Source: Amphiscolops sp. MND2022 | Taxonomy: Eukaryota | Reading direction: 5' to 3' | NCBI GenBank assembly: GCA_964187785.1 | Contig: OZ076409.1 | Span: forward strand, 60,946,001-61,010,000 | Length of the DNA stretch: 64,000 bases | Shown here: positions 241-31,656 of the stretch, piece after piece | Layout of the letters: every line of letters starts with the position of its first letter | Numbering within the stretch: the stretch's first letter is position 1 | Made by a program: the position numbers and the translations under genes | Notes under the pieces: model-generated | The model's database searches: none | Told to the model about the DNA's origin: nothing | Seen by the model: only the letters and a program-made list of their open reading frames with translations

Positions 241-242
241 GT

Positions 243-1200: not shown

Positions 1201-1327
1201 ATAAAAACTAAAACCACTGGTGTTTCTACAACACACTTAGCACTGTATACTGGGGAGAACTAAAAGTTTATGTATGGTGGGGTCGTTTAGCACTAGGAAT
1301 GGTTAGTACTAGAAGTCTAAATGACAG

Positions 1328-1567
1328 TCAGCGCATCCTAAATTCGAAAAACGGATCGATTCTTACACTTCCACTGGGCCCGTTCCTTAAGACACAGTTC
1401 TTCCTGCAAAGGGGGCACGCAACTTCTAATCTCGCCTGGGCCCACCCTCTGCGCTCGTTGTCGCGATCCTTCACCTCAATCCAACGATTGCGGCATCCCT
1501 CACAGAGGAAGTGTTGGTCGTGGAGGCTCGTTCGTGTTTCTTCATGGCAGACCATGCACTGAGGCAT
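1328..1567 (-). CDS. RING-finger-like protein, 79 aa (may be a terminal exon)
   Basis: CMVC-x8-H-x2-H-x2-CEGC-x25-CPLCR; real ATG at 1567. Confidence 0.65.
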   Translation of the reverse strand: MPQCMVCHEETRTSLHDQHFLCEGCRNRWIEVKDRDNERRGWAQARLEVACPLCRKNCVLRNGPSGSVRIDPFFEFRMR

Positions 1568-1599
1568 TTTGCGATATAATATGAAGGTATCAAAATTAT

Positions 1600-2330
1600 G
1601 GTTAGAAAATTTTGTTTCGAAATTATGGACGTTTTTGCTGGGCAGTATTCCAATTGAATGATAACCAGACTGGTTAAACCAGTAACCGAAATTTCAGCAA
1701 ACATTGAAAGATTTCAACTAAAGGGAACGTCCCTTTTGTTCACGGTACCTTGGCGTTTTTTCACACTGAAAGTGGCTTTCATGCATTACTCGCTTTCTTT
1801 AATGAACACGCGGACACTGATAAATAACCTTTTTGGGCTAACAATTAATTAGAATCCTAATTACGGACAAGTGAGATCAACAATTTCTCTTTGTTCAGCT
1901 ATTGCTATTGAACCGTGAATCAGAACATTTTGAAGCTGAATATGAACATTGTAAACGCGACCAGGCCGCCCATATTTTGTCCCCGGTGTCCCAACCATCA
2001 TGACATGTAATAGCAACGAATACTTTTCTCCTTGACTTGTAATAAACACAAAATTTGTCTCAAAAGTCCTAGTCTCACGAAAACACCTATCAATTTTGCA
2101 TGGCATTTTTTGAAAACATGGCATTTATTCATAACTGTCTTGTCATCAAAATATGGCAGATTTTGATCAATTGCCATTTTTTCATTAGCACTCAACGAAT
2201 GAGCTCGTTTTTGAATGGTCCCAAAACGACTATGGAAAGTAAGACCATATCTTTATACATGTGTCGTGGAAACCATATACATATCTTAAACTGTAAGAAA
2301 ACAACTACTAAAGGGGGTGGTAGGTAGTAC
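1600..2330 (-). repeat. Segment duplicated in inverted orientation at 21706-22290
   Basis: Near-identical shadow ORFs 1861-2124(-) and 21944-22207(+); the second copy has an internal deletion and stops just before the RING ORF. Confidence 0.9.
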
Positions 2331-2680
2331 GTCAATATTTAAATCTGACTGTATTGTCCTGGTTTCCACCAATTTGAGCATATTGTCTTGGATTCCACCA
2401 AAATAGCATTCACTGTTCGATGGCCACGAAAGCGACTGTGGAAAGTAGGACCATATCATTATACATGTGTCGTGGAAACCATATACATATCTTAAACTGT
2501 ACGAAAACAACTACCGAAGGTAGTAGTATTTCAATATGTAAATTTTAAAGAACCGTATTAGTGTCGAGGAACTATTGTTCAATTTTGGATGGCGTTTCAT
2601 AATTTTCTGGCATTTTTCCTCGTTTTGCTTTTAAATAAAATCTGGCAGATTTTGTTTAACTCCAACTTTTCGATTGGTTT
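2060..2680 (-). repeat. Repeat arm A (tandem ~190-bp GTGGAAACC/TTTCCAC units)
   Basis: Reverse complement of TTGACGTACTACCCCCTTTGGTAGTTGTTTTCTTACAGTTTAAGATATGTATATGGTTTCCACGACACATG... Confidence 0.9.
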
Positions 2681-2941
2681 ACCATGGTTTATCATAACCT
2701 CTACTTCTCGCGACGTAACGGGGTACGATGTGTTGGTTTCTCTTCACTGTATCTGATCTTCAGCAGAGTATGAAAAATCTTTCACAACTTGAAATTGGAG
2801 TTATGTTTATCACAGAGATACGCAAATTCAAGAACAGATTTCTAACAGTATTATTTTGAAATAGTAATGTTTCGCTAGATATGAACACAAATATCAACAC
2901 AACATAATTACGGTGTCCCATTTTTTGTTGAACTCTGGGGT

Positions 2942-5900
2942 CTACAAAGTGATCTGAGAACATTCTTCATCTAAGTCGTCGTCGTCATCATCAATGTTGT
3001 CAATTTCTCCGGCAAAAGTGTCATCATCATTCTCGAAAAAGAGTTTTGGTAATCTCGTTTGTCCATTTCTGTATCGTTTGAGATAAGCCACAGCCGATAT
3101 ATTCTCGTTTGATTTTTTCCCTGATATTTGATCAAGGAAGAGTGGTCTCATATCATTTACTCTGGCTCGACGAAAATTACTTCCGGGGGCGATGGTGTAA
3201 TCTTTGGTGTCTAACAACGTAACTACTTTTTTGACATCCATGGTAAAATTCTTCTTCAAAAAAGTTAGACCTCCTTGGGCAAATTTCTGAGCAATTTGTG
3301 AGTATTGAGCAGTTTCTTTTTTCTGTGTTGCTGTGAGTTGCGATGATGGGCATTGACTGTCCGAATCTGAAGACTGATACGTGGAAAGTCTTAGTTTTTT
3401 CGCCGGCGGCATCTTCTTTTTCAGTTCTTCAATTTCTTGCACAGATCCTGTGGCGATTACTAGGTCTTCTTCGTCTTTGACCAGAACGAAGCAATTACGC
3501 AGTCGTGAATGTGTCTTCATGAGGGTGTCTGCTTGATCGTGTTCAATGAATATGCCCCCCATTTCGTTGATAAATTTAATCAGAACATCCTTCGTTAACG
3601 AAATCCCATCGACTACCCCTAATCTTCCAATTGAAGTGAACCTCATACCACTTAAAAGTTGGGAATCGGGATGCGATTTCCCGATTGCAAGAGAAGTCGA
3701 GGAAATTGGGGTCTTGCAAAGTTCGAGGTATGTTGGTCCGGGGTATTTGGCATCCAAATCATCAACAAGTTTCTTAAGTATTTCAGATATTTCCAAGCCA
3801 TCATGCTTCATTGTTTCCAATTCAATCGATGCACGGAGGAATTTTCCAAATGAAGATGACAATTCCAGGAAAAGAGGATCTTTATGGTAAATATTACCGC
3901 CACCACGCATGGTTTTTGTCTGGAAATAGCGATTTGCGTGATGATTGGATTTTTCAAGCCCTTCGCACATGTGGTCAAAAGGTCTTTCCACAAACCCTCC
4001 TTCTACAATCTGCGGCATCATTGCGAGCTTCAACTTATATGGTGTCAATGAGCATTCACCAAATAACAAAATGCTTGTCTGATAATATATTTCAGCCCAT
4101 TTCTTGTAGCATTGGGCGTCAAACTGCTCAGATCTCAAGAGAATTGCACAGCGGTTCAGGCTGGAGCGCAGCAATTCACATGCATCTGTCTTCGAGATGT
4201 ATGGATTGGCGGATGCCTTGTCACTAGGGTGAGGCTTATCGAAAAGTTCTGGGAGAAATTGTTTTAGTATTTGAGCACTAGCAGCTGATTCACTCCCAAT
4301 AACAACATCGTTTGTGGGATCCCAAACATCTTCAAAAAGATTCCCTATTGAACAATCATTTGCGCCAGCCAATTCTTCTTTTTCTGCTATAATAGATAGG
4401 GCATTACTTCCGGCTAATGACACACTGTTCACAGTACCAACACCAGAACCTAGTTTTGTGTTCACATTGAACTGGAAATATGGCCTTTTTGCATCACGTC
4501 GTGTACGATTTTCTTCAAAGGCTTTGAGTGAGGGGCCATAATCGGGATACTTGTCAGTGATTATTTTCTGCGCCACTCTCCTCAAGTCGTTTTCAACACA
4601 TCTGGTGATCATGTGCGTCGGGTCAGGGCATATACATCGCACGTCTTGGAAATAAACAAGGGATGTTTTTGGCAGTTCCTCTCGGGAAGGTATCTTAAGA
4701 TCGGTTCTCAGACCTGTTTCAGGATGGCAATTTGTTGGCAAAAAGCTATTATCAGGAACATGAAGTGGCATTTTTGATTCGAAATTCGTTTCACAGGAAA
4801 TTCCAAGTATCAAGCGTAGCAAAAATGGTGTATCTCCACTGTAGGTTAGTTTAACACCACGATCTGACAACTCCGACGTTTTCTGGTAGAGCCAACCCGA
4901 ACTTTGATCACCAGCTATAGTTGGTCCAAGGTTCTGTTCCATCGCGAATCGGCTGTCTTTTCCTCGATACGATGCAAAACAGAACACTGAACTTGATGAC
5001 TGGCAACTAATTTTTTCCGATAACACTCGAAAGGCAAAACGGGTTGTTTCCAGGCCTCCAATTTCACAACCGTCGCCCCAGATATCAATTCTGAAACCAC
5101 ATAAATCATACATTCCGAGCAAGTATGCGGCCAGCTCAACACATTTTATCAGATCGCATCGGAAACCGGAGAACGTTCTTTCGGGATGGCATAGTGAAAC
5201 AAAATAGGTCTGGATTTGAGCTGATGTCTTGATCAAGCGTATACAAGGTACTACGTTGTATCCCAAGCCAACTACCGAAAGTTTCGATCTGATAAGTTTT
5301 ATGACTGCCTCTGTATTTCCAGTTTGAGCAGTAAAAGATAAAATGTCACTGAATTCCTTGGTCGATCCTCGATTCTCAAAAAGTCGGTCGATTAGAATTT
5401 TCACCACATTCACGTCTTCCTTCTTTGTGAATCCCTGGTATTTCCGTTTAACAATATTGTCTTTCACTTGTTCTACAAACTCAGTGAACCCAATTTCTTT
5501 ATTATCGTTGGCCTCATCGATGACCTTTTTCCAGAAACAAGTGGCTGCTTCTTTGTTCAATTTTTTTGTTCTCCTCTTTTGGGGGTATGGGCTTGTCGCT
5601 GCATCAAGGTACATTGTTGGTGGTGCATGCGAATCCACTGTTTCAAGGTCCATTGTTGGTGGTGCATGCGAATCCATGGTTCCAGGGTCCATTGTTGGTG
5701 GTGCATGCGAATCCATGGTTCCAGGGTCCATTGTTGGTGGTGCATGCGAATCCATGGTTCCAGGGTCCATTGCTGGTGGTGCATGCGAATCCATGGTTCC
5801 AGGGTCCATTGTGGGTGGTGCATGCGAATCCATGGTTCCAGGGTCCATTGTTGGTGGTGCACGCGAATCCATGGTTCCAGGGTCCATTGTTGGTGGTGCA

Positions 5901-6397
5901 TGCGAATCCATGGTTCCAGGGTCCATTGTTGGTGGTGCATGCGAATCCATGGTTTCAAGGTCCATTGTTGGTGGTGCATGCGAATCCATGGTTTCAAGGT
6001 TCATTCTTGGTGTTGCAAGCGAATTCATTGTTCCAAGGTCCATTGTTGGTGGTGCATGCGAATCCATGGTTTCAAGGTCCATTCTTGGTGTTGCAAGCAA
6101 TTTCATTGTTTCAAGGTCCATTCTTGGTGTTGCAAGCGAATTCATTGTTTCAAGATTCATTCTTGGTGTTGCAAACGAATTTATTGTTTCAAGCACCATT
6201 GTTGGTGGTGGTGAAAACAGATCCGAGGTACGTATTGCAAGGGGATTCAAGGTTGGTGTTACAAGAAGAGGAAAATTGAAAGTATCTTCGTAAGGAATCA
6301 AATATCGAGGGACGAAGCATTCCACAAATCTCTTCCTTGCGTCGGTCCATTGGAAATCCTTGAACCCTCGGAAGATTAAAAACATCGCAATTTTTCC
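2942..6397 (-). CDS. RAG1/Transib-like DDE transposase, terminal exon (1151 codons), with N-terminal 13-aa repeats and C-terminal BRCT-like domain
   Basis: Uninterrupted ORF; putative triad IWGDG (D 5072-5074), YSGDTP (D 4832-4834), MCEGLEKSN (E 3962-3964); CPDPTH and LTPYKLKLAMMPQIV resemble RAG1 IDALH and ITNYFHKTLAHVPEII; LSGMRFTSIGRL...LTKDVLIKFINEMGG is BRCT-like; acceptor TTTTCAG| at 6398. Confidence 0.7.
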   Translation of the reverse strand, partial: GKIAMFLIFRGFKDFQWTDARKRFVECFVPRYLIPYEDTFNFPLLVTPTLNPLAIRTSDLFSPPPTMVLETINSFATPRMNLETMNSLATPRMDLETMKLLATPRMDLETMDSHAPPTMDLGTMNSLATPRMNLETMDSHAPPTMDLETMDSHAPPTMDPGTMDSHAPPTMDPGTMDSRAPPTMDPGTMDSHAPPTMDPGTMDSHAPPAMDPGTMDSHAPPTMDPGTMDSHAPPTMDPGTMDSHAPPTMDLETVDSHAPPTMYLDAATSPYPQKRRTKKLNKEAATCFWKKVIDEANDNKEIGFTEFVEQVKDNIVKRKYQGFTKKEDVNVVKILIDRLFENRGSTKEFSDILSFTAQTGNTEAVIKLIRSKLSVVGLGYNVVPCIRLIKTSAQIQTYFVSLCHPERTFSGFRCDLIKCVELAAYLLGMYDLCGFRIDIWGDGCEIGGLETTRFAFRVLSEKISCQSSSSVFCFASYRGKDSRFAMEQNLGPTIAGDQSSGWLYQKTSELSDRGVKLTYSGDTPFLLRLILGISCETNFESKMPLHVPDNSFLPTNCHPETGLRTDLKIPSREELPKTSLVYFQDVRCICPDPTHMITRCVENDLRRVAQKIITDKYPDYGPSLKAFEENRTRRDAKRPYFQFNVNTKLGSGVGTVNSVSLAGSNALSIIAEKEELAGANDCSIGNLFEDVWDPTNDVVIGSESAASAQILKQFLPELFDKPHPSDKASANPYISKTDACELLRSSLNRCAILLRSEQFDAQCYKKWAEIYYQTSILLFGECSLTPYKLKLAMMPQIVEGGFVERPFDHMCEGLEKSNHHANRYFQTKTMRGGGNIYHKDPLFLELSSSFGKFLRASIELETMKHDGLEISEILKKLVDDLDAKYPGPTYLELCKTPISSTSLAIGKSHPDSQLLSGMRFTSIGRLGVVDGISLTKDVLIKFINEMGGIFIEHDQADTLMKTHSRLRNCFVLVKDEEDLVIATGSVQEIEELKKKMPPAKKLRLSTYQSSDSDSQCPSSQLTATQKKETAQYSQIAQKFAQGGLTFLKKNFTMDVKKVVTLLDTKDYTIAPGSNFRRARVNDMRPLFLDQISGKKSNENISAVAYLKRYRNGQTRLPKLFFENDDDTFAGEIDNIDDDDDDLDEECSQITL
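5615..6199 (-). repeat. Coding minisatellite, 15 x 39 bp (MDPGTMDSHAPPT / MNLETMNSLATPR)
   Basis: Units counted directly in the translation. Confidence 0.95.
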
Positions 6398-6799
6398 CTG
6401 AAAAGAATATTTTTTCGAAAACGGTTTTTGTGGTGGATATGTAAATGTTTCAGTTATGTATTTAGTAAAGGTATTTTTAGTTTTTGGGGATGAGGGCAAA
6501 AAACAAAGATGAAGAGAAAAAAAATTCAAAATGAATTTCCAAACTTATTTTCATATCGTGGTTCGTAGTTTTTTCCAAAATGAATGCATTGATTTCGAAT
6601 GCGAGCGACCACTAAATTGCAAGAACGTGGCGTGTAGCCAATTGGTGGTGGACAAGAGAAAACGCGCGGTTTGCACAATTATATCAATTTAAATGAACAT
6701 TCACAAATCTCCAAAAGCATCCAAAACGCCAGCGAAGTACGACTTTTACGAAAAAGATAGACACTTGCAAAAATGGTAATTAGAAAAAAAGTTACTTAC

Positions 6800-7110
6800 T
6801 GCTATACACACAGTCGGTTTGCTTTGTCCTTTCGTGGGAATTCTCCGGAGTAAGTCTTTGTTATTTAACCCACACCCGGCGAATGCATCGTCAATGATCT
6901 TTTCGAGTTTTCTGTATTTGTTCGTGAATCGTTTCTCGGCCATGACTTCGAACATTTTGCTGTCGATAAACAACAAATTTTCATCGATTTGTACAGAATG
7001 GGCATTCCAAAGTGCTAAGGGGTCCATTAAAAGAGCGTTGATATGAGATTTCAACAACGTTGTGTTCAACTCAACTAGTGATGAAGATGTATGAAGGTCA
7101 CAGTGACTAT
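6800..7110 (-). CDS. Upstream exon of the transposase gene
   Basis: Acceptor TTTCAG| at 7111; donor GCA|GTAAGT at 6799 is phase 0 and joins in frame to the acceptor at 6398. Confidence 0.65.
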
Positions 7111-7359
7111 CTGAAATATATTTGCAAAATGACGCTTTGATTTAGAAGTTGAGATTGGGAGTTAAGATGAACCGACACGTTCACAAAAAGAGGGACTTTC
7201 AATACCATAATGAAAAGAAGCTCTTGAACAACTTTCTCTTTACGTGACGTGGAAACCCTATTTTCGTGACTAATAAATTTTAAAACCAAGCCAATACAAA
7301 CTGATATGATTATGGACGTAACACGAAGCTCGTTCGTTAAAGTAAAGTAGTCAAAAAAC

Positions 7360-7842
7360 TGCAGTTTAAAAAAACTTGCCAGATTTTGCTGGCAAGCCAG
7401 GTTTTTTTAAATGCCAGATTTTTCTAAAACGTCATTCAAAATTGAGCAATATTTCCATGACAATAATAGGGTATATTAGATTTTAAATATTGACGTACTA
7501 CCCCCTTTGGTAGTTGTTTTCTCACAGTTTAAGATATGTATATGGTTTCCACGACACATGTATATTGATATGGTCTTGCTTTCCACAGTCGCTTTCGTGG
7601 CCATCGAACAGTGAATGCTATTTTGGTGGAATCCAGGACAATATGCTCAAATTGGTGGAAACCAGGACAATACAGTCAGATTTAAATATTGACGTACTAC
7701 CCCCTTTGGTAGTTGTTTTCTTACAGTTTAAGATATGTAAGCGGTTTCCACTTCACATTTATAAAGATATGGTCCTACTTTCCACAGTCGCTTTCGTGGC
7801 CATCGAACAGTGAATGCTATTTTGGTGGAATCCAGGACAAAG
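7360..7842 (+). repeat. Repeat arm A (two units)
   Basis: Direct sequence match to other arm copies. Confidence 0.9.
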
Positions 7843-8022
7843 GTGGTATGGATAATTGACTGAACTTAATCTGACCATCTGGTTGAAAATCTGGTTCATA
7901 TATATCGGATAATTATTCGAAAAGTGAACGAAATGAGTATTTTTAAAAAACCAAAAAAAAAGTGTTCAGAATAAACAGACTCTTGAAAAAGCACATGAAG
8001 ATATTTGTCAGCAAGTCGCTTT

Positions 8023-8265
8023 TCACGAAAAAAGGGACCGCGCTGTTGGGTCCTCGTAATCGAATTTCAATTCTTCGAAAGGGCTTATATCTCTGATAGC
8101 CCTGAAGCAGCAAACTCGGGACTGGTCATAAAGCAAAATGTCAGTTTGCTTTATGTTTGCATCTTTGGAACAGTGGTTAATGAGGCGTCCCAAACATAGA
8201 ATATTTGGGTGACTTTCACATATCTCGGAGGAAGCGTTGATCAGTCTCCGTCCGGGACCTTTCAC
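8023..8265 (-). CDS. SET domain C-terminal exon (PR-Set7/KMT5A-like)
   Basis: CLGRLINHC...FRAIRDISPFEELKFDY; acceptor TTCCAG| at 8266, phase 0. Confidence 0.85.
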   Translation of the reverse strand: MKGPGRRLINASSEICESHPNILCLGRLINHCSKDANIKQTDILLYDQSRVCCFRAIRDISPFEELKFDYEDPTARSLFS

Positions 8266-8339
8266 CTGGAACAAAGAAGTTCCAAGAATACCTTACAAAA
8301 GCCCACAATTTTCAACAGATTTTGGAATGAAATGATCCA

Positions 8340-8436
8340 AAAATGAATTAGTTACTAGCTGTCGTGTGAGAATATTGAAAGTTATGTATGTGGTACACAA
8401 TTTGGAGTCGTATCTGATCACAAGGCTTTACAAGTT
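8340..8436 (+). mobile_element. Degenerate Gypsy RNase H fragment inside the SET intron
   Basis: ELLAV...YVCGTQFGVVSDHKAL. Confidence 0.7.
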
Positions 8437-8495
8437 CCAGATGTTCTTGATGGTGTTCTAGATGATCTAGATAGATCTTGTTGCAACGAAGACTT

Positions 8496-8756
8496 TTGTG
8501 TTGTAGGTCTTACTGCGATGAAAGGAAGCGAAGTTGAGTAATTGTAAATTCAGGCAATGTTTGTGTAAATGTCACTATTCACTAAAATAGCAAATCAGAT
8601 AAAAATGGCAGTACTATTGGTTAGTCCCTAACCAATAGTAATGCCTTTTTTAACTGATTTGCCATTCTACTGAATAGTGACATTCGCACGTATATTGCCT
8701 GAATTTACAATTACTCAACTTCGCTTCCTTTCATCGCAGTAAGACCTACAACACAA
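8496..8756. mobile_element. Foldback MITE inside the SET intron
   Basis: ~130-bp inverted arms TGTGTTGTAGGTCTTACTGCGATGAAAGG / CCTTTCATCGCAGTAAGACCTACAACACA. Confidence 0.85.
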
Positions 8757-8976
8757 CAGCATACTAAAAAATCCTGTTTTGAAAAGCAAAAAAGTTTCGT
8801 GTACTTTCATTTAGCTAGGTCCTAGTGAACTAATAATTTTTTTCTTCTTCACTTTTAGCTCTCTAGGTCCAAAATTGATAAAAGAACAAATACTCATACT
8901 TTTTAGACTTTTTAGATTTTTTATGTGTCTTCACTCACTTGGTATGTATCTAACAAAAAAACTTTAGATTACGTAC

Positions 8977-9735
8977 CTCCATCAGATATTCAGACTGTAC
9001 GCCTTCCATCGCCAGAGCTTGTATCAATGTCATTTTCTCAAGTATTTGACCGTGGTAGTCAAGCACAATCTCGTTTTTAAAAAACTTCTGTGTGCTGACC
9101 ACTCCGCGTCCATAAGATTTGAAAATGGCTGGACATACGCCTGGCCAGCTCTGCGTGTCACATCGTTCGAATAGTAAGGTCTGACACTCGAAATCCATGT
9201 TATGTGCCATCCCTTTATACATTATTTTGACAGAACCATCACTGCCCATTCGTCTCGAATCTGGATTTTGTAGCATAGGTAAAACCAACAGAAACACTTT
9301 TCTAATATCCTGTTTGACGTCTTCTGGGGTTGTCCATTTCTGCTTCTGGAAAAATCCTTCGATTCTTTTCTCCAAGACGTTCAAGTCACATTTCCCGTTC
9401 ATGTATTTGAAGAACGTTGCGGCTCGAGCTGACTGTCGTGCGTATCGTTGAGCATCTTGATGTTTTCTCACGCATGTTTTGATGGTATCCTGGTCAAATT
9501 CATTGCCAAATTTTCCTTGCACTTCCCTGATTTGATTTTTCAATTTTGGCAATCGTGCTTCAGGGTCGTCAACAATTGGATAGATGAGTTCCAATTTGAA
9601 CTTCAGCTGATTGGCTGGTTTTTCACATTGTTGAAGTATCTGAAATACATGCTTTCGATTAAATATATGATCTGTTACACTAGAACTACAATGGTTTAGT
9701 AGATGTAGGTTTTTCAATCGAAGTTGTTTTGAAAA
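8977..9735 (-). CDS. SET-gene exon ending in the SET N-terminal half
   Basis: YGRGVVSTQKFFKNEIVLDYHG...EYLME|GTACGT; phase-0 join to 8265; 5' acceptor (GAG at 9736) uncertain. Confidence 0.75.
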
Positions 9736-9781
9736 CTCCGAAATATATAAAAATTTAAATGTCAAAAAAAAACAAACGTAC

Positions 9782-10011
9782 AGGGATCAAATACTGGTCG
9801 ACAACATGGCTCGGTCTAAAACAAGACTTCCCAACAGAATTGACGAACAGGAGCTCTGTCACGACTGGTCGGTCATCACTTTTGGAGACACATCGTTGGA
9901 ATTTCACACCTTCGGTTTTGTTGAGAAAATCAGGTCTCGTGTGGCTGGCATACTCAACCAAACCTTCGATTAACCAGCGTGGTGTCTTGTAATGTATTCG
10001 AGAAACAGAAT
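9782..10011 (-). CDS. Upstream exon of the SET gene, weakly tyrosine-recombinase-like
   Basis: Acceptor TTTGCAG| at 10012; RIHYKT...LVEYASHTRP...LLFVNSVGK; donor CCT|GTACGT. Confidence 0.5.
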
Positions 10012-10169
10012 CTGCAAAAAAGACATTTATTGAACATGTAAATTAGTTTCGAGTTTTCAGTTTTTTTTAAAATTTCATTTGTCAGAAAGACAAAATAGGC
10101 CCAAAATATTTTCGCCTTTAAGAACTCTAATCAATCGGAAATCTGACACCTAAACAAAATTTATTGAAA

Positions 10170-10890
10170 AAACAAACAAAGTTATTTCACAACGCCATTC
10201 AACACTGAACAATATTTCCATGACAATAAGACGGTTTATAAGGTTTTAAATTTTGACGTACTACCCCCTTTGGTAGTTGTTTTCTTACAGTTTAAGATAT
10301 GTATATGGTTTCCACGACACATGTATAATGATATGGTCTTACTTTCCACGGTCGCTTTCGTGGCCATCGAACAGTGAATGCTATTTTGGTGGAAACCAGG
10401 TCAATATGCTCAAAATTGTTGTTTTCTTACAGTTTAAGATATTTTAAAACGCAATTCGAACATTGAGCAATGCTTCTAATATTTCTGTTGTAGAGAAAAG
10501 AATAGTGCGAACTGTGTATTATGGCAAAGTAAGGTCAACTGACCATTTCATCTATTTTGCCATTTTCCTTCAGAATGGCAATTATTGGTTGTTCACCAAC
10601 AGTCTAGATATCGCCACTTACAACTTCCTCACGCTCTGCCATATTCCCTTCTTTGTAAATGAAAGGGCAAAGTAATTATTATCAACTAGGAATGTTAATT
10701 TTCGGCACAGCCGAGAATTGCCAAAAACGCCGAAACCCAATAAATTTAGAGTGAAGGTGCCGAAATCCAACTTGGAAAAACATTCGGAGCAGGCTATTTT
10801 TTACCAATGCGCCATCGAACAGTGAATGCTATTTTGGTGGAATCCAGGATATTATGCTCAAAACGGTGGTGGAAACCAGGACAATATATC
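10170..10890 (+). repeat. Arm A pieces enclosing a ~340-bp segment (10466-10810) that is also present at 39988-40345
   Basis: Direct sequence identity; shadow ORFs 10463 and 39989 nearly identical. Confidence 0.85.
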
Positions 10891-11004
10891 CAATTGTTGT
10901 TTGGATCATTCAAAATTGATAGCTACTTTGATTTTCATCATATGTTTGAAAAAGTCAAAAAAAGTTTAAGAGGTTAAGGGTTTAGGTTATGCATAAATAC
11001 TTAC

Positions 11005-12308: not shown

Positions 12309-12493
12309 TAATGCTTCTCCAAAAGTTCGAAACGAACGAAGTTGTCCATATCCTGGACCCTCTAACATTTATTTGGGAGCTTGCAAAAATCACTGCAATC
12401 ATGAGTGACTGGAGTGTCAGAATCAAATGGATGGAGTGGTCTACGAGAAAAGCAGTTGACATAACAGTGCCAGAAATCGACAGGGAAGATGAG
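12309..12493 (+). CDS. Tudor/chromo-barrel-like exon
   Basis: FETNEVVHILDPLTFIWELAKITAIMSDWSVRIKWMEW fits the Tudor-knot pattern; GCAG| acceptor, GAG|GT donor (phase 0). Confidence 0.6.
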
Positions 12494-12894
12494 GTTGCTA
12501 TAACATTTCATTACGTTTTTTCGAAATATTTTCCACAATTCTCTCATTTCTTAGGCCATAGTTCCGATGAAATACTAAACAGGTTTTGAGGACAAAAAAT
12601 ACACAAATCGAACTTTAAAATTGAATACCTTGCTAAGCTCATACGTCGGAGTGAACAAACTAGAACCGGAAGTTTAACAAAGTTTGCCAAACTTGGACGA
12701 CAAGCCAGATATTCGAAAATGCCAAATTAGTAGAAAATGCCAAACAAGAAAATCATAAATTTCTCGAGGGCAAGACCGAAAATTGAGATTTAAACCTTGA
12801 CATACTACTTATAAATAGGGCTAGCATTTAAAATCAAAAATTGAGAAGTCCTACTTCCAGCATGGAAATTCAAAAAATGAAAGTTAAATCATGG

Positions 12895-13860
12895 TTCCAA
12901 TTTAAAAGATTTCGTGATATTTGTGTCCCAATCGTGAGTAAGAAACTTACTCACGATTGGGACCAAAATTAATCATGACTAATTTCCCCTTTGAACTACT
13001 TTTTTAGCCGAAATTCGTTGCTATTAGAAGTTAGAGAGACAAAACATGTCCTCAATATCTTTCGTGAGGACAAAAAGGAGGCCTTTTAGTATACTAAATT
13101 GAAAAAAGATTTTGTGATATTTTGGTCCCAATCGTGAGTTAAAAATTTACTCACGATTGGGACCAAAATTATTCGTGATTAGTTTCACCTTTGAATTGTT
13201 TTTTCAGGCAAAATTGGTTGCTACTAGAAGTCAGAGAGACAAATCATGTCCATAATATCATTCGAGCGATTAAAAGCCGGCCTCTGAAAATGCTAACCAA
13301 TCAAAAATGTACCACTTCATCAAAATCTGCCAGTTTTCAATTTTTAGCCAGAGATAAATAAACGTCAGAATATTCTAAAACGTCATTGAATTTTGAGCAA
13401 ATTTTCCATGACACTAATACGGTATATCAAAATTTCATTATTGACGTACAATAATACAGTCAGAATTATATATTGACGTACTACCCCCTTTGGTAGTTGT
13501 TTTCTTACAGTTTAAGATATGTATATGGTTTCCACGACACATGTATAATGATATGGTCCTACTTTCCACAGTCGCTTTCGTGGCCATCGAACAGTGAATG
13601 CTATTTTGGTGGAATCCAAGACAATATGCTCAAAATGGTGGAAACCAGGACAATACAGTCAGATTCAAATATTGACGTGCTACTCCCTTTGGTAGTTGTT
13701 TTCTTACAGTTTAAGATTAGTATGCGGTTTCCACGACACATGTATAACGATATGGTCTTAATTTCCACAATCGTTTTAGGACCATTCAAGAACGAACTCA
13801 TTCGTTGAATGTTTATGGAAAAATGGCAGTTTAGCAAAATCTGCCAGATTTCAATGACAA
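12895..13860 (+). repeat. Satellite B (about 2 units) joined to arm A, inside the Tudor-gene intron
   Basis: Two CCCAATCGTGAGT/ACTCACGATTGGG hairpins followed by arm A units. Confidence 0.9.
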
Positions 13861-13961
13861 TCCACGTGTTGATATCCTCCACATAATTTTTTTTCAAAGA
13901 AACCCATGATTGAAGTTGATAGAAATTTGAAAATCGAGAAGTAATTTTCAAATTTTTTCAG

Positions 13962-14771
13962 CGACGGTGGAATATTAGAAAAACCCAAAAACTGGATGAA
14001 TCTCTGAGAAAGAAACGGGGTAGAAGCTTGCCTTTCAATCCAAGGAAGTTAATGCGCAATGACGAAGTTTTCTTTTGGCAATCAAATGACGAAAATTGTG
14101 ACTGTATCGGCGACTTCGAAAATTGCGAGGTTACTTGCTGCGGGTCAGTTGTTACTGCGACAGTGATGATCAACGATCCGTTCCTGCGACAGTGCTTGGT
14201 CGTTGATGACGAAGGAAAACAATTTTTTGTCTCTTATCGACAATTACGGGCAAGCTTACCTGATGAGACTGCTCCAGATGACACCAACGAAGAACCTGAA
14301 TCACCTCCGACCATAATCGATTCCAGGCCTCCCGTACCAAAAAAGCGATGCCCCCCAAAAACAATACCTTTTGTGGATGCAGTATCTTTGATACCACACA
14401 GTGACGAGAATGTTGAGTTGAAGTATGCGCCATGCTATAACAACATCCTGAAAGTTGGGTCTCTCACCAACTATGCAAACGCGGCGTTTGAAGTAAAAGA
14501 ACTGTTCTTTGATTGCAGCAAACGAAAAGCGTTTGTTAAAATGATAGGAAAAACAAACCCCGATATTGAAGTACGCATGCCCGCACTAGAAGTTCAAGTT
14601 ATCGAAGACGAAATAAAAGAATTCAATATCCACATGCTAGTTCATCCTATTAACCAAGCATTCGCGGTGTTTTCAGCAGTCAAAAAGATGGTTGGATTCG
14701 CCCAGAAAAAACATTCAATGACAAAATCATTGATTCCAGCGACGCCATTGACCCGTAAAGTGTGGTTTTGA
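13962..14771 (+). CDS. Second exon of the Tudor-like gene (second SH3/Tudor-like barrel)
   Basis: TTTTCAG| acceptor, phase 0, in frame with ORF 14028-14771; CLVVDDEGKQFFVSYRQLR. Confidence 0.55.
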   Translation, partial: RRWNIRKTQKLDESLRKKRGRSLPFNPRKLMRNDEVFFWQSNDENCDCIGDFENCEVTCCGSVVTATVMINDPFLRQCLVVDDEGKQFFVSYRQLRASLPDETAPDDTNEEPESPPTIIDSRPPVPKKRCPPKTIPFVDAVSLIPHSDENVELKYAPCYNNILKVGSLTNYANAAFEVKELFFDCSKRKAFVKMIGKTNPDIEVRMPALEVQVIEDEIKEFNIHMLVHPINQAFAVFSAVKKMVGFAQKKHSMTKSLIPATPLTRKVWF

Positions 14772-15474
14772 AACGACGTCCTCGAAAGAAACAGTGAAAT
14801 TTTCTGGGGATATCAGCAATGACTTCAAAGGGTCTAATCAGTCATGGGACAGTGTGCTTGGGAAACGATGGGACGTGATCGCAAGTAACAAAGAAGGTGA
14901 AGATGCTTTCATCAAAATATTGAGGTTCACTGAACATCGTGAATTCGGATTTTTCATGATTCGATGTAGCTTCGTAGCATGTCGTGGTCACTTCAGGTGT
15001 TCAGATAGTTATCGATCCTTAACCCAAACCAGTTTACAATGAAGGAGAATCTAATGACAAACCCAACGTCCTGTACCTCTACAAACTCGATTTCATTGTG
15101 TGTTATAGAGTAAGGAATATGTGACTCAAAGCATGTATTGTTTACTGTACTTTATGCTATCCTCAATTGAAATCTTCTGCTCAACTTCTTTTGAATCTTT
15201 AGGCGGGTTGTTTAACATGTTACTGTTTTTCTCACAGGTTTGTGTTAAAGGTATTTCAGACCCTTCGCAGATAGATATTTACGCCTTTGTGAGTTGCATA
15301 TCAGTAGGCGTCGAACGTTTTATTTCTACACTGAACGCATTCGAGGCTGATCTGCCTAACATGACGGAAAACACTCTGAACAAAATTTTTCTACAGTTAT
15401 CAACGCTATTTTCAAGTCTGGCAAAACTAAATAATATAACAAATGAATTGACAGATCATCATGTTATGGCGTGA
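14761..15474 (+). pseudogene. Possible frameshifted continuation of the Tudor-like gene
   Basis: Consecutive open frames (14794, 15121) with coding-like composition; no recognisable domain. Confidence 0.3.
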
Positions 15475-15659
15475 ATGATTATTTTATCTTTTTCTTATTA
15501 TTATGATCAAAGATCAGGGGTTACAATCTGTGGGTTTATTCAATGTCAATGTCACTCAATTTACATTACAATTTACGAAAATCGTAACACAAACTAAAAT
15601 GCTAGTTGGCTTACCAATTAGCTACATAAATAATGACGTAACAATTGTTTAGGTTTTTA

Positions 15660-17800
15660 CAGGGTACTCAGTTTTTCAATTTCGGCTTCTTCTGTTTATT
15701 CAATTCGATTCAATCCACGCTGTCTGCGTATTCGTCAAACTTGAAGCTTTTGTCTGTTTTGGCATTTTGAAGCGAACTGCAGTTTTGCTCTGATACGGTA
15801 AATACTCGTTCTCGCTTCTGATTGGCTAATCGGTCAGTAATTAAAACGCAGTCTTCCACTAGCAAAAGCGAGCGACAAGTCGAATCTGATAATCACGCAG
15901 AAATGAACGATGATATAATTCAAGCGGCAATTATGCCACCAATAAAAAGCCCTATTTGTTACTCCATAAATCAAATTGAAGTACTACAGCAACTGGGAAA
16001 TCACACGTTTGCAGCCCAGTATGAATCAGACGAATTCATGCAAAAAATTATCGGATTGCTCAAAAGACCAGACAGCACGAAAATCAACCGCCTCCCCACA
16101 CCATGGAGAGAGAAGTACAAGTGCTTCAGCTTAGATGCCAACGACTTCGTCTACATGGACGAAAGATTAGTAATCCCCAAGACGCTAAGACCAATCATCA
16201 TGAGATCACTGTACTACGGGCACCCGGGGCGAGATGCCATGTTGGCAACAATTTCTAATGTGTGGTGGCCAAGACTGCATCGAGAGGTAGTCACAATCGC
16301 CAGAGAATGCCCCCAATGCAAAGAATCTGGTAAGAACATAATAACAATACTTAGCCAAAAACAAATAGGGAAATTGCCTGAAAGTAAAGAATGTAATCAA
16401 GAGATAGCAATTGACTTCGCCGGCCCATTCCAAAACGCCATAAACGCAAAAAAGTACCTTTTAGTATCAGTATATCACTTTTCGGGATTGCTGGAAGCAA
16501 AGTTTTTAAGAAAGCCAACCACAGAAAAGGTAATAGGAATTTTAAAGAACTATATTACAAGGCACGGAATTCCACAGACCATAAGAACGGACCCGGCGAC
16601 AATTTTCCGAAGTAGGCGATTTAGGAATTTTGCCAAAAACGACTGATCCGCCACATAGAATGTCCAGAAAGGGACCACCGCGGAAATGGCAAAATAGAGA
16701 GACTAAATTCGTTTCGGAATATTTCAGATCAACCACAGCCAGCCATCCAACTCAGCGACACAGACTTCGAGTCGGGACAGGACTCAACTATCATGGTACG
16801 CGAGAGGACAAGAGGCACAAAACTTGAGAGGGCCTACAAGAAAAAGAAGGGGTACTGCTCGAGCAATCGAATCATACAATAAACTTCCTGCCAGCAGGCA
16901 GAAATCAGCCAACGATCATCTCCAAACGCGACGTGGCGAACAACACCAACCAACCATGCTGCTCCCGCGAAGCAACAAAGCAACTAGCGTCACAAAATAC
17001 AGGCACGGCATTGGCGGGAAACCAGCCAATCACAAGCGAGGACGACAGCAGCTCAGAAGTGGCAACAAGAGATGACCTGCCAATCACCATGAACTTGCCA
17101 GAAACATCACGCCCGCCAACTCCAACAACAGAACAGCGACGAAAAAAGAAATCAGCACTAGAACAACTAAAGCAAAAAGTAAAGAAAACAAAGGAGGGGA
17201 AGAAGATGAAAAGAGCAAAACAAAATCAAAAACCAGAACAAATCACAGAAATCGGAAGCGAATCAGAAGAAGAGATGTGGCCACAACAAGAAGCCGAACC
17301 CAAAATCAAAGAAAAAAAGCAAGACAATGAAGAAGAAGACAACAGAAGCGAGCAAAACCCAGCAACTATGATAGACTCTACCAATCAAAACGAAGTACAA
17401 CAACTGCCGAACCCACCACGCCGAGGAAACAGAAACCGGCCCAAAACCGACTTCTTTGGCAACAACATAATGGTTTCACAAATAACCAAAAGCCCGAGAA
17501 GAGAAGAAGAAAACGACGAAAACTAAACCTACAAACTACTCTCTAAAATCTACAAACTACTCTTAGAAGAAGAAAAATTTTCAGTTTCGTAAATTGGCAA
17601 TTGTACAATTTATATTATTACACGCCTGTACAATAAATACAAATTTGTGTTAAATCGGGGGATGTGAGAGAGGCTAAGCTATACTCTCGAAACTGACCTC
17701 ATTCAAATAAGAAAAGTGTCTAGTTGTTGACAAACATAAATGACAAACACGGTACAGCATCTAGACTTAGGACTTAGTAGAAGTCATCGTCAACAGTAAC
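15660..17800 (+). mobile_element. Gypsy 3' half: linker, frameshifted integrase, tail, PPT, LTR start (17663)
   Basis: YGHPGRD...WWP...CPQC, IAIDFAGPF, RTDPATIF; tail RPKTDFFGNNIM; CGGGGGA|TGTGAGAG; 15660-15827 is an inverted linker piece of another family. Confidence 0.9.
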
Positions 17801-17993
17801 AGATAGATTGCTTGTTTCTTATTTTTGTCTCATACAGAATTGAAAAATGTGGTAATTTGTGAATCCAATGGTTTCACATTTCGTTTTCTAATTTGCAATT
17901 TTTTATATTTAAAATTTCAAGAGGGAAAAGAAACTAGAAACTCTGTTGAATGACAACCTTGAAAACAAATAGAATAATGGTGAATAAAAACAG

Positions 17994-20900
17994 TCAACAT
18001 ATATCAAAGAGTTCATCCTCTTTAGGGATAGTTCTAATGCCTTTTAGTGAAGCCATAATCGGTAGTGCATGAGGTCGAAATTTGTTTTCGCAAAACTTTG
18101 GAGTTTGCGAATTCTCCCTCAGAAGTTCAACTGTCGAGACACGGGTCTCGCACGACTCACTCAGAACATCTACATTGTTAATGTAATCGGGGATGGTTGC
18201 GTAGGAGTCACCGGGATATTTAATGCTGACGCACGCCAGATATTTTTTGGAGATTGTGGCATCTTGGAGGGTTCCGGTTGGTTGTTTCCTGCCCAGAAGC
18301 AATCGCAACTTGCTCATGCAAAACTGTGGATGAATCTGCAAATTAAAAAGAAAATAAGTTGAACAAGTGAAACACTATGAATTTAAAATGAACAGTTTTT
18401 CAAGTCAAATTGTAAAAACCTCCTGGACGGCCTTTTCATTACCAATTGTTTTAACTGCGTCGAACAAACGAAACTTGAAAGGACAAGCTCTCTGAATTTT
18501 TTCTGTTGCAGTGAGAAGAAGCAATGCCAGCAGCTCGGGAAGATCAGGGAATTTGTCATCCGCGTAAGTCCTCGAATGGTCAAGGATCATCATCTCCCGT
18601 ATCATAGGAATGTGTCCAAGGGCCAAAAAATTGGTCCTTACTGCAATTGAGTCACCTGTAACGATTTGATTGAGGAAAGACAGAATTATTTTTTGGTTCC
18701 AATCGTGAGTAAAAAATTTTTTGGTGGAAACCAGGACAAAACAGTCAGATTTGAATGTTGACGTACCCCCTTTGGTAGTTGTTTTCTTACAGTTTAAGAT
18801 ATGTATATGGTTTCCACGACACATGTATAAAGATATGGTCCTACTTTCCACAGTCGCTTTCGTGGCCATCGAACAGTGAATGCTATTTTGGTGGAATCCA
18901 GGAAAATATGCTCAAAATGGTGGAAACCAGGACAATACAGTCAGATTTAAATATTGACGTACTACTCCCTTTGGTAGTTGTTTTCTTACAGTTTAAGATT
19001 AGTATGTGGTTTCCACGACACATGTATAACGATATGGTCTTACTTTCCACAATCGTTTTAGGACCATTCAAGAACGAACTCATTCGTTAAATGCTTATGA
19101 AAAATGGCAGTTGACAGAAATCTGTCATACTTCGATGACAAGACAGTAATAAATAAATGCCATTTTTAATAAAATGCCTTGCAAAATTGTTTTCAATGTT
19201 TTCGTGAGACAAAGACTTTTTAAAGCCTGGGTAGATCGGTTTTTGCCGTACGATTTTCATATTGAACAAACACCGGGGAGAACTCTGGGAATAGCTGACT
19301 ATTTGTCAAGGCATCCTTCCTAATGTGAAGGATCAATCATTCAATCTGAGGAATTATTCAAAGATTGGTTCACCGTAAAGGTAGTAGACAAGTTCACAAA
19401 CGAATTAAAACGGACGGTATTGGCGAGAAGAAACGGACCAATCAAATCGCGAGAGAGTGTAAATGGAACGCGGAAAACATGCAAACGAGTATTGACACTG
19501 TAGAGTGAAAAAGAAAGTATTAAGTTGTGGCAAAATTATGCATCGTGCCAATACCGGAAAAAACGCCAAAATTACAAAAATGAATCCAACACTAGAAAGA
19601 GATCGTCAGCTAAATTCGTTCAGAATTAGTCAAGTGTACGTAAAAGCGATTACGAAAAAGACCAACTGACACTTCTTTCATAACTCAAAGAGACTAAAGA
19701 AGACCATAATACCTTTCGTGAGGACAAAATGAAGGTAGTTGGCAGGCATAACTAGCATGTCACTGGGTGTAACATTGAGTCGGAGGCATCCTTCTTCCAG
19801 TTCATTGATGGCACCAAAGAATGTGGGCCTGAAACATCAAACTAAATCAAAACTAGTTTTTATGCACTGTTTCTGTAGCTATTGGTGTCCGTTGTTTTGT
19901 TGAAAAAAATTAATTTATAAATTTATAATCAACTCTTATAAATTTTAAAAACTCTTCGTTAGTTTCAATTAAAAACGCTTACGTTTGGTCATTTTCTGCA
20001 TCTGACCATTTCTCGAAGATTGCCATAGTCTTTTTTGTTGGCTTGACCGAGAAAAAAATTTTCTCGCCACGAAGAACAGTATAGCAAACAGAAGTTGCTG
20101 AAAAGTCTTGGTGCCAAGTTGTGTGCGCTGAGTCCTGCGTAATCAGCAGATAATATGAAGTGGCACATGAATAAGGCTCGAGGCTAGTCTTCCCAATGAG
20201 TTTTTCAACCAGGTGACCAATGGAATTGTCTCTCACCATCTTTGGGACTGTGTACAGCTTCTTAAACACAAAAACTTAGTTTAAAAAATGAAAATAGTTG
20301 AAAAATGAGGTTATTCTTTCATCAAGTTTCCCAAGTCACTTTTGGCTTCATCCTGATATCAATAACATTCAGTGGATACTTCACGTCATCAGGGCCACAT
20401 GAATTCAAAACATCTACGAACACCGGTGTGGATAGAGATTGCGTCTGAAACTAGGAAGTATTCATTTCGTTTTATTGGAGAGAGGTAATGAATAATTTTT
20501 GTGAAATAATAACCATGGTGAAATGTGAAAAAAATAGATAAAACACTACATGAATCCAATATACGAGACATTTTGGCTTTTTAAAAGACAGTATTTTTGC
20601 GAAAAGATAATGAAAAACTTACAGTGCCGATCATTGCCCAGTTCACATCTAGTTGCTGCTCCGGATCAGTCAAATTTGATGCCATCAGGAGTTGCTGGAC
20701 TTCACTGGGAAAATACGCACTCCTGTCAACTTTGGGAAGCTGTATACCGGGACAATGGTTTGCACCACTTTTCCAAAGCAGAGGTATGCCGTGTTGCAAC
20801 AGAGAGCCTAAATGCACACTTGGATTCTCCTGAGGGCCCTGCCACTCGTCGAAAGAAAACCCACATTCCAGAGGAATTCTCTCGCAAAATTCAAAGTACC

Positions 20901-21622
20901 CTGTGGTACCAAAAGGAGATGGGGGATACTCTGAGAAGGTGACATCAACAGGCATTGGAGCTAGGGCTACTTGGCAAGATAGTGATCTTGCGACGTGATT
21001 CCGGAGTACGTACTGGTACGCGAACAACTTGCCACAACTCAGACAAATATGGGGACTTTTTTGACGACCTTTTGCAGCTGCTGGAAAACATCATGTGTAA
21101 ACACAAACATGTGCAAACATTTTGATTTGGATTTTTTGTTAATCTTCCTCCCAAACCCCCCGCCCACACACAGTTCTTTATATCTTTCCAGATCATAAGT
21201 ATTCGAGCGAAAAACTCAATAATTTCAGTAAGGCTAAATAACTTACGATATTTGTACATGGAGACTTCTGTGCCGGCATCAATTTTGGCTTTCTGCTTGA
21301 CACAGTACTTAGCGTTCTTTTGATGACGCATCCGACTTTTCTTATTAGTGAATAACTGTCCACAATTCTCACAGGTCAGTTCTTTTTTCTTCCAGTCCTC
21401 ATAGGGCATTCCTGGGCACTGCTTCTCATGACGCTGGAGGTTGAACAACCGATCAGTGACGTAATCACAGGTGCCATTGGTACAAGAAAATAGGTTGGTC
21501 GAGCTTTTTTTGTACTTCTTGTATGATGGTGCTTCATTCTGCCTTTCAGTATTTGGCGACAACTGCCCGCATTTCTCACACGTCACTGCTTGTGACTGCG
21601 ATGAGCAAGCCTGATCAGACAT
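17994..21622 (-). CDS. C2H2 zinc-finger + JmjC demethylase (KDM2/KDM7-like); 7 exons 21622-21247, 21080-20623, 20444-20340, 20260-19983, 19828-19713, 18655-18420, 18335-17994; 636 aa
   Basis: All six introns GT-AG and phase-compatible; TTWHQDFSATSVCYTVLRGEKIF (HxD), MPANYLHFVLT (distal His), DSIAVRTNFL and KFPD fit the KDM2/7 JmjC consensus; three C2H2-like fingers. Confidence 0.85.
18695..19215 (+). repeat. Satellite B piece plus arm A in JmjC intron 5
   Basis: Direct sequence match. Confidence 0.9.
19230..19660 (+). mobile_element. Gypsy RNase H/linker fragment in JmjC intron 5
   Basis: VDRFLPYDF...PGRTLGIADYLSRHP...EELFKDWFTV. Confidence 0.85.
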
Positions 21623-25175: not shown

Positions 25176-25189
25176 AAAAACGCTAACCA

Positions 25190-31635: not shown

Positions 31636-31656
31636 ATATCAGGGGAGATGTTTAAA

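Follow-up and report, generated by a model that had tools for sequence, protein, structure and literature searches.

A probable family of very large DNA transposons with a RAG1/Transib-like transposase and a cargo of chromatin genes

A 64,000-nucleotide stretch of DNA from Amphiscolops sp. MND2022 (GenBank assembly GCA_964187785.1, contig OZ076409.1, positions 60,946,001 to 61,010,000 of the forward strand), referred to here as the window, contains a cluster of genes encoding a transposase and proteins that resemble writers, erasers, and readers of histone methylation. The region between positions 1328 and 21622 is, with a probability of about 0.8, the gene-bearing core of a degenerate, approximately 53-kb copy from a family of cut-and-paste DNA transposons of very large size, whose chromatin-gene cargo serves the element. 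Each element carries four conserved genes, which encode a transposase with a predicted RAG1/Transib-like fold and a BRCT-like tail, a KMT5A-like SET-domain protein, a Tudor/Agenet-like protein, and a protein combining C2H2 zinc fingers with a JmjC domain. Copies of the family span 16.5 to about 53 kb. A first-pass annotation of the window had listed five genes within about 20 kb and proposed that they form a mobile unit. All five are present, between approximately 1.3 and 21.7 kb, and the mobile unit is borne out by multiple copies bounded by terminal inverted repeats (TIRs), of which the complete ones have identical termini, different flanks, and 2-bp target site duplications (TSDs). The extent given for the unit, 1328–21622, was too small, as it runs beyond the start of the window on the left and to position 51042 on the right.

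The element ends in 21-bp TIRs, 5′-CATTACAGTGCA..CAAGC, which are followed by clustered subterminal GGAATC motifs. When the related loci L001, L003, and L004 are aligned, homology downstream of the transposase gene stops abruptly after ...GCTTGCCTGTGCACTGTAATG, and at the A end the three loci diverge directly past CACTGTAATG. The element and its right end occupy the following positions in the window:

1–51042, the part of the giant element inside the window; its left (A) end lies approximately 2,248 bp beyond position 1, judged from L001
50620–51021, subterminal region with four GGAATC-core motifs in both orientations (50898–51005) and one copy of a repeat of approximately 185 bp (50620–50825)
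51022–51042 (+), right (B-end) TIR, GCTTGCCTGTGCACTGTAATG, the reverse complement of the 21-nucleotide A-end terminus CATTACAGTGCACAGGCAAGC

The terminal 16-mer of the B end is an exact match, has the orientation expected for the opposite end of the element, and is found nowhere else in the window. In another copy, the B end (L014:426–851) is 93% identical to window positions 51045–50620. On the other side, L001:1–16403 aligns with window positions 16386–1, and the inter-copy homology ends at L001:18651. Therefore, from the B end at 51042 and the A end located via L001, the window holds about 51 kb of a copy of about 53 kb. Window positions 51045–2925 are colinear with a TIR-bounded 39.7-kb element on contig ctg185161. 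In the outermost 400 bp, at five ends, the GGAATC-core motif reaches a density of 7.5–12.5 per kb, compared with 0.4 per kb internally, a 20- to 30-fold enrichment that involves both orientations, and two further copies of the 185-bp subterminal repeat are located near the A end in L001.

Three complete copies have been delimited:

L007:175–17870, 17,696 bp, flanked by TT/TT
L012:3051–19509, 16,459 bp, flanked by TA/TA
contig ctg185161, from L014:429 (B-end TIR) to L003:17550 (A-end TIR), 39,733 bp, flanked by AG/AG

The copies in L007 and L012, from different contigs, share 98% identity, and their homology begins and ends exactly at the TIRs. The probability that three flanking dinucleotides match by chance is approximately 3e-4. 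Duplications of 3, 4, and 5 bp fit none of the three complete copies; a length of 2 bp alone fits all of them. Just outside the B end, window positions 51052–51577 are 71% similar, in inverted orientation, to L004:19918–20449, which lies just outside an A end; this sequence may be a repeat that is preferred as a target.

All contigs carrying the copies that were fetched belong to one ENA assembly, ERZ25074608. The transposase homologues, which are spread over many contigs, form four clusters at 90% identity that comprise 93, 128, 72, and 21 distinct sequences. Homologues of the SET open reading frame (ORF) form 22 such clusters, several of which have 15–62 members, and the ORF encoding the N-terminal part of the JmjC protein is likewise multi-copy. 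Searching 1.84 billion representative proteins with a profile of the transposase yielded 558 clusters, including 189 with E-values below 1e-30; those that were inspected all consist of metagenomic sequences. Four related loci come from other metagenomes, on contigs of 2–6 kb that are too short to show cargo. Contigs L009, L010, and L011 are 99.6–99.8% identical across 20 kb around the JmjC gene, and represent either very recent copies or redundancy of the assembly or of haplotypes.

Conserved genes and their arrangement

The coding segments of the window copy are the following:

2945–6529 (−), main exon of the transposase, a single ORF of 1195 residues with a RAG1/Transib-like DDE core
approximately 2945–3679 (−), BRCT-like C-terminal domain of the transposase
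6749–7141 (−), conserved coding segment, the probable 5′ exon of the transposase on the basis of its conservation in relatives
8023–11748 (−), KMT5A/SET8-like SET-domain gene, with SET exons 8977–9765 and 8023–8265
9758–10042, 10985–11329, and 11269–11748 (−), upstream exons of the SET gene, conserved in L005
12263–15039 (+), tandem Tudor/Agenet-like gene, with exon 1 within 12263–12586 and exon 2 within 13923–15039
18405–21661 (−), C2H2 and PHF8/KDM7-like JmjC gene, with JmjC exons at approximately 19982–20269, 19713–19833, and 18405–18654
1328–1570 (−), RING-like ORF of 80 residues with the pattern C-x2-C...H..C-x2-C...C-x2-C

The window transposase has no match by Pfam, NCBIfam, phmmer, or a profile search against the PDB sequences, and no Pfam transposase family matched either this protein or nine of its distant homologues. 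The D, D, and E motifs are invariant in the aligned transposases (17 homologues) as DIWGDG, SGD[ST]PF, and CEGLEKSNHH, and are accompanied by a D-x-x-H motif; in the window protein they read DIWGDG, SGDTPF, DPTH, and CEGLEKSNHH. The AlphaFold model computed from the 17-homologue alignment has a mean predicted local distance difference test (pLDDT) score of 69, with most of the core at 70–94. When the core model was compared with the PDB by Foldseek, the top 30 matches were exclusively the RAG1 core, HzTransib, and BbRAGL, the RAG1-like protein of amphioxus (E-values of 1e-5 to 1e-3, probability of approximately 1.0), followed by Hermes of the hAT superfamily. The predicted RAG1/Transib-like fold of the transposase core, which the first-pass annotation had proposed, is supported by this uniform set of matches. 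The conserved segment at 6749–7141 is kept directly upstream of the transposase in L005, L006, L007, L017, and L018.

The C-terminal 200 residues of the transposase contain a conserved GxRF..G / GG / A..FA.G.F.FL pattern that is typical of BRCT domains, and the order of β-strands and α-helices in the tail of the AlphaFold model fits a BRCT domain. Pfam BRCT_2 matches the aligned C-terminal position in six of the nine distant homologues, below threshold (E-values of 3e-4 to 1.5e-2). The tail of the window protein itself has no Pfam BRCT match, and a profile of the C-terminal domain found no match in the PDB. The tail is probably BRCT-like, in agreement with the initial annotation. A tandem array of 15.5 copies of a 39-nucleotide unit, which encodes a 13-residue, PPTMDPGTMDSHA-like repeat, occupies positions 5605–6210 inside the transposase ORF. 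The transposase ORFs range from 958 to 1248 residues among copies that are more than 90% identical, and the array is therefore probably variable in copy number. The transposase of the compact subfamily lacks the 13-residue tandem array, and in one divergent copy the transposase gene is tandemly duplicated (L005:6357–11997).

The two SET exons are joined over a GT..AG intron of about 710 nucleotides that holds a palindromic repeat, a near-perfect hairpin-type miniature inverted-repeat transposable element (MITE) of approximately 240 nucleotides at 8500–8745. The SET domain matches Pfam SET above threshold, as do its paralogues (E-values of 7e-11 to 3e-10), and the SAM-binding and catalytic motifs GRG, NH, and ELKFDY are present in the window sequence. 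In a PDB search, the top 14 matches of the SET protein are all KMT5A/SETD8, at a weak E-value of 4e-4. By sequence, the SET gene thus appears closest to KMT5A/SET8, if weakly, as had been supposed.

The Tudor-like protein and the N-terminal exon of the transposase have no Pfam match. In the AlphaFold2 model of the Tudor-like protein, residues 1–70 form a β-barrel with block-mean pLDDT values of 70–91, and residues 91–160 form a β-barrel mostly at 63–78 with a low-confidence loop at 105–119. Foldseek matches of the N-terminal 150 or so residues are tandem Tudor/Agenet domains of FMRP, FXR1/2, UHRF1, ADCP1, SETDB1, BAHCC1, and 53BP1 (E-values of 7e-5 to 5e-3), and several tryptophans are conserved in barrel 1. 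The gene product is thus modelled as a tandem Tudor/Agenet domain and is a putative methyl-lysine reader. The gene is an intronless ORF of 429 residues in L007 and L012. The first-pass annotation was right about the type of fold; the gene in the window is broken, with a 2-bp deletion after position 14759 that shifts the frame relative to L001 and L004.

The C2H2-JmjC gene, described initially as intact, retains all the iron ligands HxD...H, with WHQD and YLHFV read in its exons. Its central exon matches PHF8 (E-value 3e-11), KDM7A (2e-10), PHF2 (2e-7), and KDM2A (9e-6). In place of a PHD finger, the N-terminal exons code for fingers of the C2H2 type, with weak matches to Pfam zf-C2H2_6 and zf-C2HC_2, and the homologue P0083 carries Pfam zf-C2H2 (PF00096). 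The SET and JmjC genes are not the host orthologues; they are very divergent (the SET E-value of 4e-4 is against human KMT5A), as noted in the first-pass annotation, and multi-copy. The introns of the genes are of the GT-AG type, but not all of them are short, as that annotation had it: some are of about 148 nucleotides, and others reach 0.7–1.3 kb because MITE-like repeats sit inside them.

The fifth gene of the first-pass annotation, the RING ORF, has the cysteine and histidine pattern given above. No Pfam RING family matches it above threshold (best E-value 4.8e-4), and it is probably not conserved in the family. Copies of it are confined to the window, L001, and L004, the last of which has lost one zinc-ligand cysteine, and the subfamilies of L005, L006, L007, and L012 lack it. 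The ORF is lineage-specific and probably lies outside the core.

Four loci are closely related to the window copy:

L001, 98.7% identity, colinear with window positions 1–16386
L004, 93–95% identity, colinear
L003, 84–91% identity, colinear
L002, about 87–93% identity, a deletion derivative without the SET gene

The L002 derivative probably arose by recombination between two copies of a MITE-like repeat. The copies L007 and L012 differ by an 858-bp deletion in L012 (L012:4428–4434 against L007:1840–2698) that removes part of the SET gene, so cargo-deficient copies exist. Across the family, the conserved genes occur in three orders:

window type: transposase (−), SET (−), Tudor-like (+), JmjC (−)
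L005, L007, L012, and L013, with a transposase 55% identical to that of the window: SET (−), Tudor-like (+), transposase (+), JmjC (−)
L006, with a transposase 37% identical to that of the window: Tudor-like (−), transposase (+), SET (−), JmjC (−)

The SET, Tudor-like, and JmjC genes adjoin the transposase in all subfamilies, and SET is always its neighbor. The rank order of divergence is identical across all four genes, and no coding segment apart from these four is conserved between subfamilies. The genes are thus multi-copy and their association recurs across diverged subfamilies, as the proposal of a mobile unit predicted, although their order, which had also been expected to recur, is not fixed.

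The ratios of nonsynonymous to synonymous substitutions (dN/dS), calculated by the Nei-Gojobori method between window-type copies, are:

transposase, 0.41–0.49
SET, 0.24–0.32, and 0.70 against L004 (dS under 0.1)
Tudor-like, 0.22–0.30, and 0.51 against L004 (dS under 0.1)
JmjC, 0.26–0.34

The values for the cargo genes are within 0.22–0.34 in six of the eight comparisons; therefore, the cargo is constrained at least as much as the transposase. The genes are under purifying selection, which on the cargo equals or exceeds that on the transposase.

Repeats and retroelements in the window

The window has a GC content of about 38%, contains no N, and is very rich in repeats. The main non-genic features of the window copy are:

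1837–2325, left arm of a 489-nucleotide inverted repeat (98%), a copy of a dispersed MITE-like repeat
21743–22231, right arm of the same inverted repeat, a copy of the dispersed MITE-like repeat
15822–17526 (+), nested integrase fragment of a long terminal repeat (LTR) retrotransposon (Pfam Integrase_H2C2 and rve), an insertion and not part of the gene set
22323–50619, internal non-genic part, with repeats, tandem duplications, arrays of 200-bp repeats, and decayed Gypsy-type pol/integrase fragments

The 489-nucleotide inverted repeat was considered as the termini of the element and rejected; inter-copy homology runs through both arms, which belong to a dispersed repeat with further copies in the window and in L008, L009, L011, and L014. 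The integrase fragment resembles other retroelement fragments in the window, and both BEL/Pao-type and Gypsy-type retroelements are present among the loci examined. These retroelements, taken with cargo genes whose nearest structures are human KMT5A and PHF8, point to a metazoan host; tRNA and Rfam scans and Pfam searches of the flanking ORFs gave no further indication of the host. The internal part is colinear with L008, L009, and L014 at 85–94% identity, with several repeats at the same relative position. Old retroelement fragments are also common to the window copy and the ctg185161 copy at the same relative positions, for example at window 40007–42257 with 94% identity. The larger copies are inflated because nested retroelement and MITE debris has moved along with them. 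The window copy is degenerate and, given the frameshift in its Tudor-like gene and its many nested insertions, probably non-autonomous by now.

A repeat of 1.4–1.6 kb is present in four copies of 98% identity at window 22323–37238, three in one orientation and the fourth in the opposite one. The repeat lies within tandem duplications of 4.5 and 5.6 kb and adjoins the JmjC gene in L008, L009, and L014. A 306-bp tandem repeat with four copies that are 98% identical is located at 33363–34588, inside a 497-residue ORF of a decayed retroelement. The MITE-like family consists of units of about 200 bp, often arranged as dimers, with at least 13 copies in the window, including some inside the introns of the SET, Tudor-like, and JmjC genes. 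Its copies are found at 2051–2679, 7327–7840, 10181–10887, 12904–13860, 18722–19206, and 21686–22017, and at many positions beyond 22 kb. Outside the giant element, an apparently intact Gypsy-type LTR retrotransposon at 56512–62012 has identical 193-nucleotide LTRs (56512–56704 and 61820–62012) and a single gag-pol ORF of 1618 residues (56704–61560).

Function of the cargo and alternative explanations

The transposase would bind the TIRs and the subterminal GGAATC motifs, excise the whole unit, and reinsert it with a 2-bp stagger. All three cargo proteins would serve the element, most likely by being recruited to its copies, to which the JmjC protein might be guided by its zinc fingers and the reader by methyl-lysine. 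Once recruited, the cargo may remove repressive methylation of the H3K9 or H4K20 type and reset the local chromatin, which would keep the copies transcribed and accessible and thus counter their silencing. The SET protein may deposit, and the tandem-Tudor protein read, a mark that is permissive or aids recruitment. A more far-reaching proposal is that this is an active animal transposon family, forming a new lineage of the CMC/Transib-RAG1 group, in which a selected private SET8-like writer, a zinc-finger-targeted KDM7-like eraser, and a tandem-Tudor reader, together with the BRCT-tailed RAG1-fold transposase, program the chromatin state, the repair state, or both of the copies of the element. 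This proposal is tentative, and the odds are somewhat against it.

Several points weigh against the interpretation of the window as part of a transposon with serving cargo. The flank of the window copy at the B end (at 51043) is TT, and that of L001 at the A end is AC; because these differ, the two ends of the window copy are not proven to belong to one insertion. Either L001 is another copy rather than an allele, or ends have been exchanged. The evidence for the 2-bp TSD comes from three copies only, and a search for empty sites among the fetched loci found none, with the 71% similarity between two flanks as its sole result. In sequence, the transposase does not significantly resemble RAG1, Transib, or any transposase family of Pfam, and the TM-scores of its fold matches are modest, at 0.35–0.49 on the target. 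The model of the Tudor-like protein has a low overall pLDDT of 47. The differences in gene order between subfamilies indicate that the unit has been rearranged often. No explanation is at hand for combining a writer and an eraser that may both act on one mark, H4K20me1, and everything said here of cargo function is inferred.

It is possible that the cargo serves mainly in the handling of DNA breaks and not in counter-silencing. The SET8-like protein, through H4K20 methylation, the 53BP1-like tandem Tudor, and the BRCT tail would then recruit or mimic the double-strand-break response at excision and integration sites and couple the breaks to host repair, in parallel to RAG, which couples cleavage to chromatin reading and non-homologous end joining. 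KMT5A, 53BP1, and BRCT proteins have established roles at double-strand breaks. The transposase itself bears the BRCT-like domain, the SET domain has the H4K20me1 writer KMT5A as its closest relative, and the fold matches of the tandem Tudor include 53BP1 and the H4K20me1 reader BAHCC1. However, these matches equally include readers of H3K9 methylation (UHRF1, ADCP1, and SETDB1), the lysine that would be written, erased, or read is a matter of inference, and a JmjC eraser suits counter-silencing better. The explanation is a serious competitor but an unlikely one. Counter-silencing is preferred, as a tentative choice, since the sequences analyzed here do not discriminate between the two.

It is improbable that the chromatin genes are passive passengers, captured once from the host in the manner of Pack-MULE or CACTA transduplication and without a function in an otherwise ordinary large transposon of the CMC/Transib clade. 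CACTA-type elements commonly capture host sequences, and the element tolerates tens of kilobases of junk, including nested retroelement fragments common to different copies. Cargo has been lost or broken in L002, in L012, and in the Tudor-like gene of the window. Nevertheless, the same three genes have been kept with the transposase across subfamilies with only 37–55% identity despite the reshuffling of their order, the catalytic motifs of SET and JmjC are intact, and the genes are full-length, multi-exon or intronless, and not fragments. The explanation is disfavored because of the selection data, with cargo dN/dS below that of the transposase in most comparisons. It is very improbable that segmental duplication multiplied a host cluster of SET, Tudor, JmjC, and a domesticated RAG1-like gene that does not move as a transposon: the copies are large and rearranged and have old nested insertions in common, L009, L010, and L011 are nearly identical including the flanks within the fetched range, and no empty site was found, but inter-copy homology ends to the base at the 21-bp inverted termini and gives way to unrelated flanks, the flanking dinucleotides match at three copies, transposase binding sites typically form subterminal motif arrays of this kind, and hundreds of distinct transposase sequences lie on many contigs.

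Transposons are usually seen as targets of silencing by histone methylation, and a few are known to carry a single counter-measure, such as VANC, SET, or TET/JBP. If the cargo acts on the chromatin of the element itself, the family would provide a natural model for mobile DNA that rewrites host chromatin. If the proposal of a private writer, eraser, and reader is true, the element would be a self-contained module for epigenetic counter-defense or chromatin-coupled transposition. The defined termini and motifs permit annotation of the family in the source genome.

Relation to known systems

Elements of the CMC-Transib clade, which comprises EnSpm/CACTA, Mirage, Chapaev, and Transib and from which RAG1 is derived, have 5′-CA..TG-3′ termini and TSDs of 2–5 bp (PMC12730594). 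The element described here resembles them in its RAG1/Transib fold, its D/D/E motifs, and its termini CATTACAGTG...CACTGTAATG with 2-bp TSDs, which agree with the 5′-CA..TG-3′ ends and 2–4-bp TSDs of CMC elements. Arrays of short subterminal motifs, a hallmark of CACTA, are present as the GGAATC-core arrays. Subterminal repeat arrays and large size are reminiscent of CACTA/En-Spm. The element is placed in the CMC-Transib clade because of its CA...TG termini, short TSD, and subterminal motif arrays, and fits there as Transib, as CMC, or as a new lineage within the clade. The name Transib, used in the first-pass annotation, is not borne out in the strict sense. A CACAATG-like heptamer as in Transib is not found at the termini (CATTACAGTGCA...), where a TACAGTG string lies 3 nucleotides in from the end, and no 5-bp match occurs at the three complete copies (TT, TA, and AG). 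TSD length varies even within Transib, and a 5-bp TSD is not an absolute criterion for this group because some lineages are reported to have 3-bp and TA TSDs (preprint, bioRxiv 10.64898/2026.08.26.747230). The element differs from the rest of the clade in a terminus that is neither CACAATG nor CACTA, in a TSD of 2 bp and not the canonical 5 bp of Transib, and in the addition of three chromatin-enzyme or reader genes and a BRCT-like transposase tail. Full-text literature searches turned up no Transib or CMC element that carries SET, JmjC, or Tudor genes, and none whose transposase bears a BRCT domain.

ProtoRAG and other RAG-like transposons share with the element a RAG1-fold transposase accompanied by a chromatin-reading partner, which in the present case is a putative reader. 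The PHD finger of vertebrate RAG2 reads H3K4me3. By contrast with ProtoRAG, the element has TSDs of 2 bp instead of 5 bp, no TIRs resembling recombination signal sequences with a heptamer, spacer, and nonamer, and wholly different accessory genes; no RAG2-like Kelch/PHD gene was seen in the element. The family extends the clade from which RAG1 arose by a deeply divergent lineage, with a BRCT-like tail and a transposase that again stands beside chromatin-reading partners, and bears on how RAG became coupled to chromatin marks and end-joining repair.

Starships, Teratorn, and Mavericks/Polintons are alike in their length of tens of kilobases and in accessory genes that are mobilized as a unit. 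Unlike them, the element is predicted to be moved by a DDE transposase of the RAG1 fold with short TIRs. Genes for a tyrosine recombinase, a piggyBac transposase, herpesvirus proteins, PolB, a capsid, or a packaging ATPase are absent among the ORFs of the window and of the complete copies; the lack of capsid and PolB had been noticed from the outset. A DDE transposase with 21-bp TIRs that can mobilize 17 to 40 kb or more is of relevance for the delivery of large gene cargo.

The best relatives of the cargo enzymes in structural databases are the host proteins KMT5A (PR-Set7/SET8) and KDM7/PHF8/PHF2, with the GxG, NH, and ELxFDY motifs of SET and the HxD...H ligands of JmjC kept. PHF8 and KDM7 have an N-terminal PHD finger that reads H3K4me3; the JmjC protein of the element has C2H2 fingers in its place. 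Histone and DNA modifiers are known from other DNA transposons: SET genes in HarbingerS and MuDR elements of the oomycete Phytophthora, TET/JBP dioxygenases in fungal Kyakuja/Dileera/Zisupton, Plavaka, ESTA, and other elements, and the anti-silencing gene VANC in VANDAL (MuDR) elements of Arabidopsis (PMC12730594). These elements and the one described here are alike in that an autonomous DNA transposon stably co-carries a modifier presumed to counteract silencing (PMC12730594). The combination of a RAG1-like transposase with a methyltransferase, a demethylase, and a reader-like protein was not found described, and the nearest precedents, in oomycetes, fungi, and plants, carry one modifier each, whereas the present element, of the CMC/Transib clade and probably from an animal genome, has a three-gene set of a writer, an eraser, and a reader-like protein.

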